A DNA stretch of 64,000 nucleotides from contig NC_043013.1 of the NCBI RefSeq assembly GCF_006345805.1, positions 21,700,001 to 21,764,000 of the forward strand, given 5' to 3'. Origin of the DNA: Octopus sinensis. Taxonomy: Eukaryota. The translations under genes and the position numbers were made by a program. A model generated the notes under the pieces. It was not told where the DNA came from. It saw nothing but the letters and a program-made list of their open reading frames with translations, and ran no database searches. Of the stretch, positions 6,360 to 60,950 are shown piece by piece; position 1 is the stretch's first letter, and each line of letters starts with the position of its first letter.

Positions 6360-6596
6360 CTCTGTTTATTTCGGTGTAAGTCCAATCCTTGTAAAAACGC
6401 AATTCAGCAGTTCTATTATCTTCAGATAACAACAGGCATCCTTGGTCATTAAATTTATAGTCAAACGACCGGCAATTTGGCATTGCTTCGCAATGAAGCA
6501 GACATTTCGTGTAACTGATGTCAGTAAAGTAACCCAAGCTATCAAAGGTACTCGAAGGTATACTAGCTTTGTCAATAAAATCTAAAGGACATCTTC
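6360..6596 (-). CDS. PAN/apple-domain exon A, copy 1 (internal, phase 1-1)
   Basis: Acceptor ttttcttcttcttacag|GA, donor AGA G|gtaagg; 237 nt open. (G)RCPLDFIDKASIPSSTFDSLGYFTDISYTKCLLHCEAMPNCRSFDYKFNDQGCLLLSEDNRTAELRFYKDWTYTEINR(G) has the PAN motif C-x3-C-x5-C-x-S-F-x-Y...C-x-L. Confidence 0.85.
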
Positions 6597-8159
6597 CTGT
6601 AAGAAGAAGAAAATAGGTAAATCAATGTTGTCTTTTGTTGTTTTTCGTAATGGTGGTGGAACTGTTTCACGTTGTATAGCTTTATTATTTATGAATAATG
6701 AGAAATAATAAATAGATAAATTTTCTACTCTTTAATAGACATGAATATTGTGATAATATTGTGGTGATAAAAGAGATGATAATAATAATAATAATAATAA
6801 TAATAATAATAATAATAATAATAATAATAATAATAATAATAATAAGATTTAACCACTAATTTTCAAATAGGGGGTCTCTTTTATCATCATTAGCAACAGT
6901 AGCAGCCTCAGTAGTTGTAGCAGCAGCAATAAATCTTTTATTTTTATTTTATTTTATTTATTTTTTTTTTTTTAATGAAAACTTATTAATAATTTAACTT
7001 TACTTGAAAAGAAAATTTCTAACAGTACACCGAATCGCTTGTCCAATGGTTATAAAGGAAGCACGCCCGTCAGGAGGCTGCCAGCCTGATGGCAAAATAT
7101 TTTCAATATTGAATTTGTTTGTACTGGCAGTCTGAACGGGTCATCTGAGGTGATAAGTCGCCAAAGGGTATTTTCTTTCTTTTTAGTGCTTCCAAATCCA
7201 AAATAAGAAATGTTGAGCTGACGAAAGAAATGCTGAGTTTATTTGGCTAATCTAGAAACGTTAACGTTCTCAAATAATCTTTGTACCTGTGATATTTTTC
7301 TGTTTTTACCTCCATACCTTCGTGAGTTATTTTGAGTAAACATTATCTGAGAGAAATTTTCTTTAAGTAGTGGAAATGGCAAAAACACTTTTTTGGCTGC
7401 TATTTCTAGCAAGTTCAGTATGTGGCAAAGTAATTTATTTTACTAAGCCCTAATTATATAATGTAATATTTTGAATTCGCCTTAAATGGTCCTTTTACAT
7501 ACTGAATACTTGGTGAAATTGATTAATAACTAATTAATTTTACCCTCAATTGTTGATAAATATATATATATATATATATATATATATATATATATATATA
7601 TATATATATATATATATATATATATATATATATATATACATACACATACAAACATAAATGCATACATATTTATATTGAAAATGCGAGCAAGAGAAATAAT
7701 ATTCTTAAGATTATAAACCTGGAAAATTACAGGAAAATTCATTAGACATGAAAATATTTGGATTTAGAAAATATTAGCTTTTATTAAAACTAAAAATTTC
7801 ATTACAGGTTATTACTTCTATTTGTGTGTGCGTGTTACTTATATGAAAAATTAAAATTAACTCAAAATATTTTTTGAACTTTAAAACATATTCATTTTCA
7901 AAATTATTAATTAATAATTAGAATGTTGAAAATAGTAGAATATAATTAGTACAATAAATAGAACAATACAAAATTAGTTATATATTGCTGTAAAATCTAC
8001 CTATAGCTACAAATCCACAGTAAAATTTGCTGGAGTTATTGCCTGAGTTATTGCCAAGTCTTCCCATTTTTAGTCTTGACCCAATGCCTATTTTTCACAT
8101 GAGGAATTTGCCTACCATGTATACTATTTTATTTTGTATAAAGCTTTAGTTATATACTC

Positions 8160-8624
8160 TCTCTTTTACTCTTTTACTTGTTTCAGTCATTTGACTGCAG
8201 CCATGCTGGAGCACCGCCTTTAATCGAGCAAATCGACCCCGGGACTTATTCTTTGTAAGCCCAGTACTTATTCTATCGGTATATTTTGCCGAACCGCTAA
8301 GTGACGGGGACGTAAACACACCAGCATCGGTTGTCAAGCAATGCTAGGAGGACAAACACAGACATAAAAACACACACACACGTACATATATATATATATA
8401 TATATATATATATATATATATATATATATATATATATATATATATATATATACATATATACGACAGGCTTCTTTCAGTTTCCGTCTACCAAATCCACTCA
8501 CAAGGCATTGGTCGGCCCGGGGCTATAGCAGAAGACACTTGCCCAAGATGCCACGCAGTGGGACTGAACCCGGAACCATGTGATTCGTAAGCTAGCTACT
8601 TACCACACAGCCACTCTTGCGCCT
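8160..8624 (-). mobile_element. tRNA-derived SINE with internal (TA)n
   Basis: Reverse complement gives A-box (gtggctgtgtggtaag) and B-box (ggttcagtccc) head; near-identical copy at 18905-19331. Confidence 0.85.
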
Positions 8625-8863
8625 ATTGGGACTTCTGTTTCTCTGTATTCAAGCGTATCAATATTTTAACAAAATGATAGTACCTTTTTTTTTATCAAAA
8701 TCAAATAAATTTTAATATTCACATTTTATCCTTAGCTGCAATATTTTAAGTAATTTTTTTTATGCTTTTTACCATATATAATAAGTTGTCTTGAACTTTT
8801 CCAAGTGTAATAACTTGTCCTGTAATTTTTCAAGTTTATAATCTTAAGGATATTGAAAAATAG

Positions 8864-9424
8864 AGATAAAGAAATAATTGTATTCTCAAACGTAGGATAA
8901 TGCTAACAACATAGCATTAGTAGGATAAACTATCCATATTTTGTAGAAAAATCTGTTGGCGACCAGCCATGAGACTCGAACTCACATACCTATGACTACG
9001 CGGTAAGGGCTTTACCATTAAGCTAAACTGCCGAGCGACAAGTGCTTCTCCAATTTTCGGATATTTACTTCTAGCTTTATAAGACGCTATCATACAGATG
9101 AAGAAATAATCTTATTCTCAAACGCATGGTGATGCTAATGATATAGCATGAACTGGAGAAATTAGCCATATTCTGTTTCTTGACTTTCAACTTATGTTGT
9201 ATTATACGTAAGATAGCGTCTTTTAAAGCTAGATTTATACATCCTAAAATTGCAAAAGAATTCGTCGCTTGGCAGTTTAACTTAATGGTAATCACAGGGA
9301 TGTGAGTTCGATTCTCATGGCTGGCCAACGACAGATTTTTCTAAAGAAATATGGATAGTTTATCCTATTCGTGCTATGTTATTAGCATTAACCTGCGTTT
9401 GAGAATAAAATTATTTCCTTATCT
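8864..9424. repeat. Inverted repeat (arms ~8864-9091 and ~9212-9424) containing a tRNA-like segment
   Basis: The arms are reverse complements of each other. Left arm 8963-9032 (-) reads GGCAGTTTAGCTTAATGGTAAAGC...GAGTTCGAGTCTC (A and B boxes) with imperfect acceptor and anticodon stems. Confidence 0.75.
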
Positions 9425-58739: not shown

Positions 58740-59160
58740 GTTACTGGCTGAAAATATGCAGCATGTTGTTAATTTGGGGTTCTAGTCTGTCTATGAGGAA
58801 GATATCTTCATAGACAGACTAGAGCCCTAGTATGTCAGACGACTGAGGTTGGTGTTGCGCTCAAAATTGACTGGATAGAATAAAATCCAAGCAGTCGATA
58901 CGTGAGCGATAGCATCACTTCGGTATGGAGTGGGAATTATAAAATGGCAAAGGAGAGAAATGAAGAATACCAAGACCAGAAAAATTTTGACAGTGCACAG
59001 AGCTTTCCCTCCTAAGAGTGATACTTGTCCCGAAGAAAGTGTGGGAGTGGCTTCATCAATTTCCAGTTGCCAGTACTGTAGCGAACAGAGAAAAACAGCC
59101 CAGAGTGGAATATACAAAAACAAAATGAAACACACAAAGGCAGGGATCATCGACACTGAA
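58740..59160 (+). mobile_element. R4/Dong-like LINE fragment (paralog of 4630-5070)
   Basis: Collinear with copy 1. Confidence 0.75.
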
Positions 59161-59699
59161 AATTGTTACATCAGTAAATATAAAATTGCTTTCCAAATGA
59201 CTTCCTTTGCAGTCAACATCATCACTGTTGAGGGATTGAGGCAGTCCCTTAAAGGTGATGAATTCCCTTTCTCTAGGAAAGTCTGGTACCAAATCGTTTC
59301 ACTCCACAACTCCTCAATAAAGAATCCCGGTTGCTGCTGGGTTTTGATGATAATTTAAAGAGACAGGGTCGTAAAGGTAATAGCGTCTCCCCAGGCATAT
59401 AATCTGACTTGGTTCTTGGACTTCAAGACAGGTTCTATTAAAAGAATTGGCCTGTCCGCAGTTTGAAGCATACTTTTGTGTCTGTACACACTTCGCTGTT
59501 TCAAATTGTCTTTCAACGCAAGAAGCGAATGGAGAAAATTCCTGCCATCTGAATGCAATAAACATACAGTCGGTAAGAAAGCGACAAGAGTTTTTGAGAT
59601 GAGTGAGTTCCCGGTGATTGCAAATGTGTGGTTGAGTTCGTGGGACTGTCGATGCATACACTCAATCGTGTGCATCTATTCACCTAAGAATCACAGATG

Positions 59700-60360
59700 G
59701 AATAGTTTGGGAATGTTTTACACATCTTCACTGTGCCACTAAAACATTGGAATTTGACAATCCGCGTCAGTTTTTCTTTAGCTCTTTCTCTGTGAAACCG
59801 AGTATTTATAGGTTTTTCTGCAAATGTGCAAAATTGTTGGTACATAATCTAATGCACTTCTGATGAAAGGTGCAAACGAGACTTTATGGTCAGGGTACAA
59901 GAACTGTAAGTTTGCCATAAATGTTCTATTTTCCTAAGACTTTTGATTGCACATTCACATCCTCTGGGCAGCTGACCCTTACAACAATGCATGAATTTTT
60001 CCCCTGTACCACAGAACAATATCAGGTCTGCTATATTTGTACCGAATTGATGTTTGTTTTTGCGGGGAGTTCCACCAGTATTCCTTGCTTTCAAAAGGTC
60101 TGATTACTTGCTGGTTCTAACATGGCTTCGATGTATACGTCCGAGCAGTCCTTCCTATGGGTAGCATCGTAAATAGTCTTTGCAACTATATCATGCCTCA
60201 GGGGCAGGTAGAATCTCGTAGGCATTTTGTCGCAACTACTGATGATGTGGGTGACATCTTCCACACTGGTATAGCAGAGCCAACATTTTCCATCGCAGCA
60301 CGGAGGTTTGGTGCTATCTTTGTCCCTTTTATTCATCGATTATTTAGTAGTTATCTGTAC
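59700..60360 (-). mobile_element. RLE-type LINE fragment (paralog of 24780-25480)
   Basis: CCDGKCWLCYTSVEDVTHIISSC...RHDIVAKTIY. Confidence 0.75.
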
Positions 60361-60719
60361 GTATGAGTGTGTGCGTGCATGTATGTATGCATGTATGCGT
60401 GCATCTATATATGTATGCGAGTATGTATGCATTTATGTATGTATGTATGTATGTATGTATGTATGTATGTATGTATGTATGTATGTATGTATGTATCTAT
60501 CTATCTATCTATCTATCTATCTATCTATCTAATTTGGTATTGAGTCCGTACCTTTATATGACATTGGACTTAGCCAATGATAGAGCCAAGTAAATCAAAG
60601 TCCTGGCCTCAATATAACAGTCTAACACATTTTGGAAGGTGGTGATTTAGTCTTGTCTAACTGCCTGTGTATAATTCCAACAAAATAAATAAATAAAAAC
60701 AAGAAAATGACGCCCTTAC

Positions 60720-60950
60720 CTCTGTTTATTTCGGTGTAAATGTAATTTTTGTAAAAATACAATTCAGCAGTTCTATGACCTATAGTTGACAAGTAGCATC
60801 TTTTGTAATTATAGCTATAGTCAAACGATTGGCAATTTGGCATTGCTTCGCAATGAAGCAGACATTGCGTGTAACTGTAGTCATTAAATCTACCCAAATC
60901 ATTCTCTGAAGGTATACCAGCAAGGTCAATAAAATCAAAAGGACATCTTC
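60720..60950 (-). CDS. PAN/apple-domain exon A, copy 3 (phase 1-1)
   Basis: Same splice sites; 231 nt open. (G)RCPFDFIDLAGIPSENDLGRFNDYSYTQCLLHCEAMPNCQSFDYSYNYKRCYLSTIGHRTAELYFYKNYIYTEINR(G). Confidence 0.85.

Follow-up and report, generated by a model that had tools for sequence, protein, structure and literature searches.

Probable diversification by amino-acid replacement of the second PAN domain in a tandem octopod gene family

We have analysed a 64,000-nucleotide (nt) stretch of Octopus sinensis DNA (assembly GCF_006345805.1, contig NC_043013.1, forward-strand positions 21,700,001 to 21,764,000; hereafter the window) containing three paralogous exons, A1, A2 and A3, which encode the second PAN/apple domain (PAN-2) of predicted secreted proteins. 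A1, A2 and A3 are homologous, and each belongs to a different one of three tandem gene copies; they are not parts of a single gene. They differ predominantly at amino-acid-changing positions on a fixed cysteine scaffold and, on balance, we think it probable that PAN-2 of this octopod family is diversifying by amino-acid replacement faster than neutral sequence, in proteins of a recognition type. The kind of system is familiar, being a lineage-specific tandem family of secreted proteins built on a cysteine scaffold with a positively selected domain. What is new here is an octopod PAN family absent from descriptions in the searchable literature.

Results

Three PAN-2 exons on a fixed cysteine scaffold

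The three exons are located as follows.

6360..6596, minus strand: A1, PAN-2 exon of unit U1; 237 nt, phase 1-1
25941..26171, minus strand: A2, PAN-2 exon and coding exon 4 of the complete gene G2
60720..60950, minus strand: A3, PAN-2 exon of unit U3

The exons are 231-237 nt in length, carry two leading bases and one trailing base, and are bordered on both sides by phase-1 introns, with an AG acceptor (...ttcttcttacag before the exon) and a GTAAGG donor (gtaaggg after it). All three are open throughout, with no stops and no frameshifts, and their peptides match the Pfam model PAN_1 (PF00024) with E values of 9e-9, 3e-11 and 2.5e-8 (34-43 bits, the gathering cutoff being 21.4 bits). A tblastn search detected no PAN-2 exon copy in the window beyond these three. 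Five cysteines (C2, C29, C33, C39 and C51), the motif SFDY and the terminal YTEINR are invariant, and the sixth cysteine of the PAN-2 apple pattern (NSVGC) is encoded by the next exon, a linker, in every copy. By sequence, the arrangement is that of an apple domain, with a core C-x3-C-x5-C ... C and an outer pair formed by the first and sixth cysteines. The original observation that the cysteines, SFDY, YTEINR and the splice sites do not vary is confirmed across all three exons.

Nucleotide divergence among the three exons amounts to 19-26%. A1 and A3 differ at 43 of 231 nt (18.6%). Of their codons, 26 have changed nonsynonymously and 2 only synonymously, and there is an indel of 2 codons. Between A2 and A3, 59 of 231 nt differ without an indel and 35 of the 76 residues are changed, with 35 nonsynonymous codons and 2 synonymous-only codons. 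The strong predominance of nonsynonymous differences claimed previously from manual counts is reproduced, at 26:2 for A1/A3 and 35:2 for A2/A3.

Exon divergence relative to introns and other exons

Among the units, divergence is 4.7-7.4% in the donor-side intron (190 nt) and 8-16% in the acceptor-side intron (100 nt). The proportion of nonsynonymous differences (pN) in the PAN-2 exon is 0.209-0.278 versus 0.074-0.091 in the kilobase (kb)-scale distal introns, a ratio of 2.3-3.7 (Fisher p = 1e-6 to 2e-15), and the nonsynonymous to synonymous ratio (dN/dS, or omega) among the three window exons is 1.58-1.77 by the Nei-Gojobori method (NG86). The other 3' exons are less divergent among U1, U2 and U3, the linker differing by 2-5% and the exon of the third PAN domain (PAN-3) having a pN of 0.06-0.095, a synonymous proportion (pS) of 0.11-0.26 and a pN/pS of 0.3-0.7. 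Expressed relative to 100-nt flanks, exon divergence gives ratios of 2-3 for PAN-2 in the A-type group and a median of 1.7 for the first PAN domain (PAN-1) family-wide; linker and PAN-3 exons, again family-wide, do not diverge more than their flanks. In a simulation that scattered the observed numbers of substitutions at random, the three open reading frames (ORFs) and all 15 cysteine codons were retained in 0.025% of runs (P = 2.5e-4). Thus, the scaffold is under purifying selection while the remaining exon diverges.

Comparison of O. sinensis with O. vulgaris orthologs reveals 8 nonsynonymous and 0 synonymous differences in PAN-2 and 5 of each in the other three exons together. In an ortholog pair from O. 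bimaculoides and O. sinensis, in which introns are 10-11% divergent, omega is 0.97 for PAN-2, 0.42 for PAN-1 and 0.49 for PAN-3. In the same pair the linker reaches an omega of 2.9, calculated on 28 codons with 11 nonsynonymous and 1 synonymous differences. PAN-2 is the fastest of the three PAN-domain exons in this pair as well, but is extreme only among the A-type copies of the window.

Codon models and selected sites

Codon models of the Goldman-Yang type (GY94) were fitted with F3x4 codon frequencies on neighbour-joining (NJ) topologies. For the three window exons the single-ratio model M0 returned an omega of 2.36 (likelihood-ratio test, LRT, versus omega = 1, p = 0.021), a result which, together with the NG86 values, bears out the dN/dS above 1 expected for these exons. 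This test is unaffected by recombination because three taxa allow one unrooted topology. With five A-type PAN-2 exons M0 omega is 1.86 (p = 0.017), and the comparison of M2a with M1a yields a doubled log-likelihood difference (2dlnL) of 39.3 (p = 3e-9), with 21% of sites at an omega of ~10. Across all ten PAN-2 exons with DNA, M0 omega is 1.16 (p = 0.38) and 2dlnL is 36.2 (p = 1e-8), with 29% of sites at ~4. PAN-1 shows the same pattern as PAN-2 in weaker form (n = 8; M0 omega 1.30, p = 0.29; M2a vs M1a p = 2e-4, 31% of sites, omega ~3.7); PAN-1 is also positively selected and the signal thus extends beyond the PAN-2 exon. For PAN-3 (n = 12) M0 omega is 0.66 (p = 0.057) and M2a vs M1a is not significant, with no selected class. 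PAN-2 sites having a posterior above 0.9 for omega > 1 are situated in the b1-b2 loop and strand b2 (exon positions 13-15, 20, 22 and 24), before b3 (40), in the b3-b4 hairpin (45-48), in b4 (52) and in b5 (62-69).

Predicted fold of PAN-2

The structure was modelled with AlphaFold2 (AF2) on the O. sinensis protein P0155 as representative of the A type. Overall confidence is poor, with a predicted local distance difference test (pLDDT) score of 58, and only the PAN-2 part (residues 110-190, pLDDT 74-93) is reliable. Strands are predicted at 113-121, 128-131, 150-154, 159-163 and 172-183 and a helix at 135-144, giving the order b-b-helix-b-b-b that a PAN domain should have. The top Foldseek matches are all PAN/apple structures, consistent with a PAN fold, in which a helix packs on an antiparallel sheet of five strands. 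Within the PDB, the closest matches are to the SML-2 lectin, MIC4, the apple domains of factor XI (FXI) and prekallikrein, and the N domain of plasminogen and hepatocyte growth factor (HGF).

Gene G2 and the three duplicated units

Self-comparison of the window identified U1, U2 and U3 as collinear duplicated units which, with the PAN-2 exon excluded, differ by 7-9% by substitution over several kb. The units and the remaining exons are listed below.

597..6845, minus strand: unit U1, comprising PAN-2, linker and PAN-3 exons with introns
22632..26445, minus strand: unit U2, the 3' half of G2
53877..61210, minus strand: unit U3
42780..42810, minus strand: G2 coding exon 1, ATG and first half of the signal peptide (MLRRNYLQII); donor GTAAGT
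38812..38847, minus strand: G2 coding exon 2, remainder of the signal peptide (FLFYISLTFGNG)
37998..38255, minus strand: G2 coding exon 3, PAN-1
23795..23890, minus strand: G2 coding exon 5, linker carrying the sixth cysteine of the PAN-2 apple pattern (ELWNDF...NSVGC)
23096..23292, minus strand: G2 coding exon 6, PAN-3 and stop codon
2153..2248, minus strand: U1 linker exon
1430..1647, minus strand: U1 PAN-3 exon, interrupted by a premature TAA (1619-1621)
56061..56156, minus strand: U3 linker exon
55175..55365, minus strand: U3 PAN-3 exon copy a, intact
54414..54604, minus strand: U3 PAN-3 exon copy b, intact, from a ~760-bp local tandem duplication

G2 is a complete, intact gene of six exons whose introns are all phase 1. 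The spliced product is 282 amino acids (aa) long and matches PAN_1 in three stretches (E = 6e-20, 71 bits). Coding exon 1 is identical to the exon of O. sinensis L002. The start of PAN-1 was considered as a signal peptide and dropped, as the O. sinensis comparison put the signal in two small upstream exons. The PAN-1 exon and the signal-peptide exons are each present in one copy within the window. U3 runs past the window and its 5' exons would fall beyond position 64000; its positional counterpart in O. sinensis is the full-length gene LOC118761179. The tandem duplication in U3 (54340-54906 vs 55097-55676) doubles the PAN-3 exon, both copies being open and both having a stop.

U1 has no signal-peptide or PAN-1 exons of its own within the window, because these exons are single-copy there, and its last exon is interrupted by the TAA. 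In O. vulgaris the A1 ortholog has a 71-nt frameshifting deletion inside the exon, at a locus with flanks 95-98% identical. U1, with A1, is a partial, 5'-truncated pseudogene. The earlier statement that no copy has a stop or frameshift is thus correct for the exons and fails for the gene copy to which A1 belongs. At the corresponding O. vulgaris locus, the annotated 105-aa protein CAI9735321.1 (L001 10001-13683, OX597830.1) is a spurious model that runs from unrelated upstream DNA into the first half of the A1 pseudo-exon with its deletion. A conserved ORF in intron 2 (2491-2748, minus strand, with copies in U2 and U3) appeared PAN-like by eye and was dropped, having no Pfam hit at E <= 10.

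The family in octopods

The family consists of predicted secreted proteins of ~280 aa with a signal peptide, encoded by two small exons, followed by PAN-1, PAN-2 and PAN-3; all introns are phase 1. A word-indexed protein search with the A3 peptide alone gave no match; the family surfaced only through a full HMMER scan and a family profile. A profile of the three peptides run against 1.84 billion representative proteins retrieved small Octopus proteins aligned across the whole exon. Members occur in O. bimaculoides (XP_014769852.1), O. sinensis, O. vulgaris and Argonauta hians, and are named in databases only as 'uncharacterized protein' or 'Apple domain-containing protein'. All 15 clusters found in the family-profile search are octopod and, to judge from these searches, the family is octopod-specific and tandemly duplicated. 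A single PAN-2 exon is present in each of the homologous genes annotated in three Octopus species. Mean amino-acid identity between paralogs is 49% in PAN-2 and 72-74% in the remaining exons. The window is 92-98.5% identical to loci of O. vulgaris and O. sinensis, with noncoding divergence of 1.5-5%, which places it in the O. vulgaris group. In the searchable literature, nothing was found linking octopus, cephalopod or squid to PAN/apple domains, PF00024 or the gene identifiers of the family, in agreement with the earlier remark that the family was not recognised as described.

Giant multi-PAN proteins also occur in Octopus, with 21 PAN stretches in O. sinensis XP_036361601.1 and 14 in O. bimaculoides XP_014770598.1. 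They resemble the family in domain type and genus and are the top hits of the exon profile, the best outside the family, but are repeats of 1,700-2,600 aa rather than three-domain proteins of ~280 aa.

Mosaic history of the array

Homology between the paralogous units of the window is lost within a microsatellite upstream of PAN-2.

61125..61210, no strand: (ATT)n microsatellite upstream of A3, at which paralog homology stops

Equivalent (ATT)n repeats lie near 6760-6850 and 26300-26500, each about 170-250 nt upstream of a PAN-2 exon. O. sinensis L003 is 98.5% identical to window positions 61208-62863 up to the microsatellite; past it, the exon itself is 22% divergent, its flanks 10-17% and the region of the last exons 18%. 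Similarly, the 5' half of G2 is ~5% divergent from a P0158-type gene of O. sinensis and O. vulgaris and its PAN-2 region is 31% divergent. The exon cassettes downstream of the microsatellite junction differ in the positional counterparts from O. sinensis. The alignments suggest that these junctions are probably breakpoints of unequal crossing-over or segmental duplication at which gene halves have been recombined, probably recurrently. Informative sites in the flanks fit a single tree, ((A1,A3),A2,(Os155,Ov7a)). Within the exon, A1, A2, A3, O. sinensis P0155 and O. vulgaris L007a have motifs in common in combinations that conflict with one another, and a permutation test of the pairwise homoplasy index (PHI) type for recombination in the exon is not significant (p = 0.28).

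Additional features of the array were observed. Each PAN-2 exon has, ~190 nt downstream, a compound (TAGA)n/(TACA)n microsatellite (6100-6170, 25700-25745 and 60450-60530) whose length varies among the three units. Approximately 110 nt of the intron upstream of the PAN-1 exon (38256-38365, minus strand; same position in L002-L007) are 91-96% identical in seven paralogs whose PAN-1 exons differ by 10-19%, so that this intron flank is better conserved than the exon; a splicing signal, regulation or conversion may be the cause. Introns and spacers consist mostly of retroelement debris, with some elements common to the units in inverted orientation. Reverse-transcriptase fragments lie at 28427-28756 and 61106-62332, both on the plus strand (RVT_1, E = 3e-11; zf-RVT). 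An inverted repeat at 20131-20713 / 21851-21270 is 98% identical and encloses an ORF (20441-20971, minus strand) with a weak match to a GIY-YIG nuclease, which together suggest a Penelope-like element at 20131-21851. A second inverted pair is located at 31217-31538 / 32163-31841.

Discussion

Diversification of PAN-2 and the alternatives

We propose that the array would grow and reshuffle by segmental duplication and unequal crossing-over, as its junctions indicate. Crossovers in the (ATT)n upstream of PAN-2 could join the signal peptide and PAN-1 of one copy, its 5' half, to the PAN-2 and PAN-3 of another, its 3' half, and would leave dead copies without a 5' end, such as U1 with A1. Meanwhile, about 20-30% of PAN-2 codons appear to replace amino acids faster than neutral sites, as the codon models support statistically, with the six cysteines, the splice sites, the strand of SFDY and the terminal YTEINR all held fixed. 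We think it likely that the products are secreted recognition molecules that are lectin-like or bind proteins. In such molecules PAN-2 would supply the variable contact with the ligand and would diversify against a target that itself changes, which could be a pathogen or parasite, prey or a gamete partner.

Several observations weigh against this proposal. The whole-exon test for omega above 1 reaches p = 0.02 only, on 76 codons, and the codon models were our own implementation rather than PAML or HyPhy. In the clean O. bimaculoides/O. sinensis pair PAN-2 omega is ~1, not much above it. One of the three copies in the window is dead, and the family-profile search found no RNA-derived (Logan) protein of the family. 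Within the exon 106 of 210 pairs of informative sites are incompatible, which indicates mosaicism or parallel change, and recombination inflates tests of the M2a type. Finally, pS in the PAN-2 exon, at 0.13-0.19, is 1.4-2.5 times intron divergence (p = 0.35, 0.04 and 0.01), which may be explained by an exon core of greater age than its flanks or by homogenisation of the flanks. Because exon pS exceeds intron divergence and the array is mosaic, the contrast between exon and intron is probably partly inflated. The claim that exon divergence exceeds that of the introns is upheld (19-26% vs 5-9%), with the qualification that part of the contrast probably reflects mosaic history. The broader claim of a rapidly diversifying family is sustained insofar as a multigene family with dN/dS above 1 exists, and needs amending in view of selection on PAN-1 as well, of the ortholog pair just mentioned and of the pseudogene status of A1.

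The alternative which we take most seriously, while judging it improbable, is that the PAN-2 types are old lineages whose introns and 3' exons were later homogenised or swapped, the diversity being retained with or without selection. The elevated exon pS fits this, as do the conflicting motif combinations within the exon and the behaviour of the positional counterparts, L003 being orthologous (1.5% divergence) as far as the microsatellite and then 10-22% divergent, and G2 being close to O. sinensis P0158 in its 5' half only. However, pS in PAN-2 is no higher than the 0.11-0.26 of PAN-3 in the same units and, for this reason, the PAN-2 exon is not clearly older than the rest of the unit. In addition, neutral conversion should homogenise the exon too, so that keeping its differences would still need selection, and the between-species orthologs show solely nonsynonymous change in PAN-2. 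Gene conversion limited to the introns had been named in advance as an outcome that would overturn the prediction; a mosaic history was indeed found, yet dN exceeds dS inside the exon independently of the introns.

An origin of the amino-acid excess in neutral drift of decaying pseudogenes under relaxed constraint is quite improbable. It would suit U1, with its missing 5' exons and premature TAA, and the deleted O. vulgaris ortholog of A1, an exon which has changed since the species split at about the rate of its flanks (2/166 nt vs 5/270 nt). Neutral decay, however, can neither drive the divergence of an exon to 2-3 times that of its own introns nor raise omega above 1; retention of the cysteines, reading frames and splice sites at the simulated probability is unexpected under decay, and G2 is complete and intact. 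It is highly improbable that the PAN-2 exons are alternative cassettes of a single transcription unit, whether mutually exclusive exons or alternative 3' blocks, in the manner of Dscam or of a reversed protocadherin/UGT1A arrangement. In favour of this reading, the signal-peptide and PAN-1 exons form the only 5' set in the window, with U2 and U1 both downstream, and all introns are phase 1. Against it, each PAN-2 exon has a linker and a stop-carrying PAN-3 exon to itself further downstream, U3 is positioned upstream of the 5' set, the last exon of U1 is broken and the annotated Octopus genes have a single PAN-2 exon. Lastly, we regard as extremely improbable a mutational process targeted to the exon without selection, such as hypermutation or an editing-like mechanism. 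The changes do cluster, A1 vs A3 containing 5 triple-hit codons where an estimated ~0.5 would occur if the 43 differences were random, and exon pS is somewhat above intron divergence. Against this, transitions and transversions occur in ordinary proportion (kappa about 2) and A-to-G changes are not in excess, the changes avoid all scaffold codons and the ~24 nt at either end of the exon, untargeted hypermutation would yield stops and cysteine losses, and the excess is nonsynonymous rather than general. Selection for replacement in PAN-2, operating on a probably recombining array, remains the explanation that we prefer.

To our knowledge, cephalopods are without antibody-type immunity, and the diversified recognition families described from them are few. 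The family is, from its sequences, a candidate for recognition in immunity, in prey capture or venom, or in fertilisation, and would extend the short list of rapidly diversifying scaffolds with the PAN/apple fold. The locus also illustrates how a tandem array can swap gene halves at an intronic microsatellite and shed dead partial copies. A stronger proposal, which we consider doubtful, is that octopods possess a dedicated hypervariable recognition system of tandem secreted three-PAN proteins with selected PAN-2 and PAN-1 domains, whose exon cassettes would be reshuffled by microsatellite-mediated unequal crossing-over. If true, octopods would have species-level, perhaps individual-level, repertoires for immunity, self/non-self or gamete recognition, constituting a PAN-based analogue of the fibrinogen-related proteins (FREPs) of snails or the Sp185/333 proteins of sea urchins.

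Comparison with known systems

Among solved structures, SML-2 of Sarcocystis muris and MIC4 of Toxoplasma gondii are the best matches to the octopus domain in both sequence (SML-2, E = 2e-5) and fold (Foldseek E = 7e-6). Going by their PDB titles and general knowledge, both are galactose lectins; they are small secreted ligand binders made of tandem PAN/apple modules. The likeness is at the level of the domain only. Identity is ~15% and the organisms and biology are unrelated; we know of no tandem-array hypervariability in SML-2 or MIC4 proteins. The apple domains of FXI and prekallikrein and the N domains of plasminogen and HGF, which are protein- or heparin-binding modules, have in common with PAN-2 the fold, the cysteine pattern C...C-x3-C-x5-C...C...C and phase-1 introns. 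In contrast, the vertebrate domains are conserved and joined to a protease or kringle, whereas the octopus proteins are PAN-only, lineage-specific and fast-evolving.

In mode of evolution, close parallels are conotoxins, snake-venom phospholipases A2 (PLA2s) and abalone lysin, in which a fixed cysteine frame is likewise combined with dN above dS in the mature or binding part, with a conserved signal-peptide region and introns, and with tandem families undergoing birth and death of copies. PAN-2 displays this pattern of dN/dS above 1 on a fixed cysteine frame, with the caveat that one ortholog pair has an omega of ~1, and differs in that the scaffold is PAN and average omega (1-2.4) is below that of the classic toxin cases. 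Loci of the major histocompatibility complex (MHC) type, in which binding-site exons keep their diversity by shuffling motifs and the introns become homogenised, are similar in having an exon more divergent than its flanks, mosaic motifs among paralogs and recombination junctions near the exon; they are dissimilar in fold and function, and the octopus comparison is drawn from paralogs with a PHI-type test that is not significant. The mutually exclusive exons of Dscam do not provide a parallel, as each PAN-2 exon has its own linker and terminal exon with a stop.

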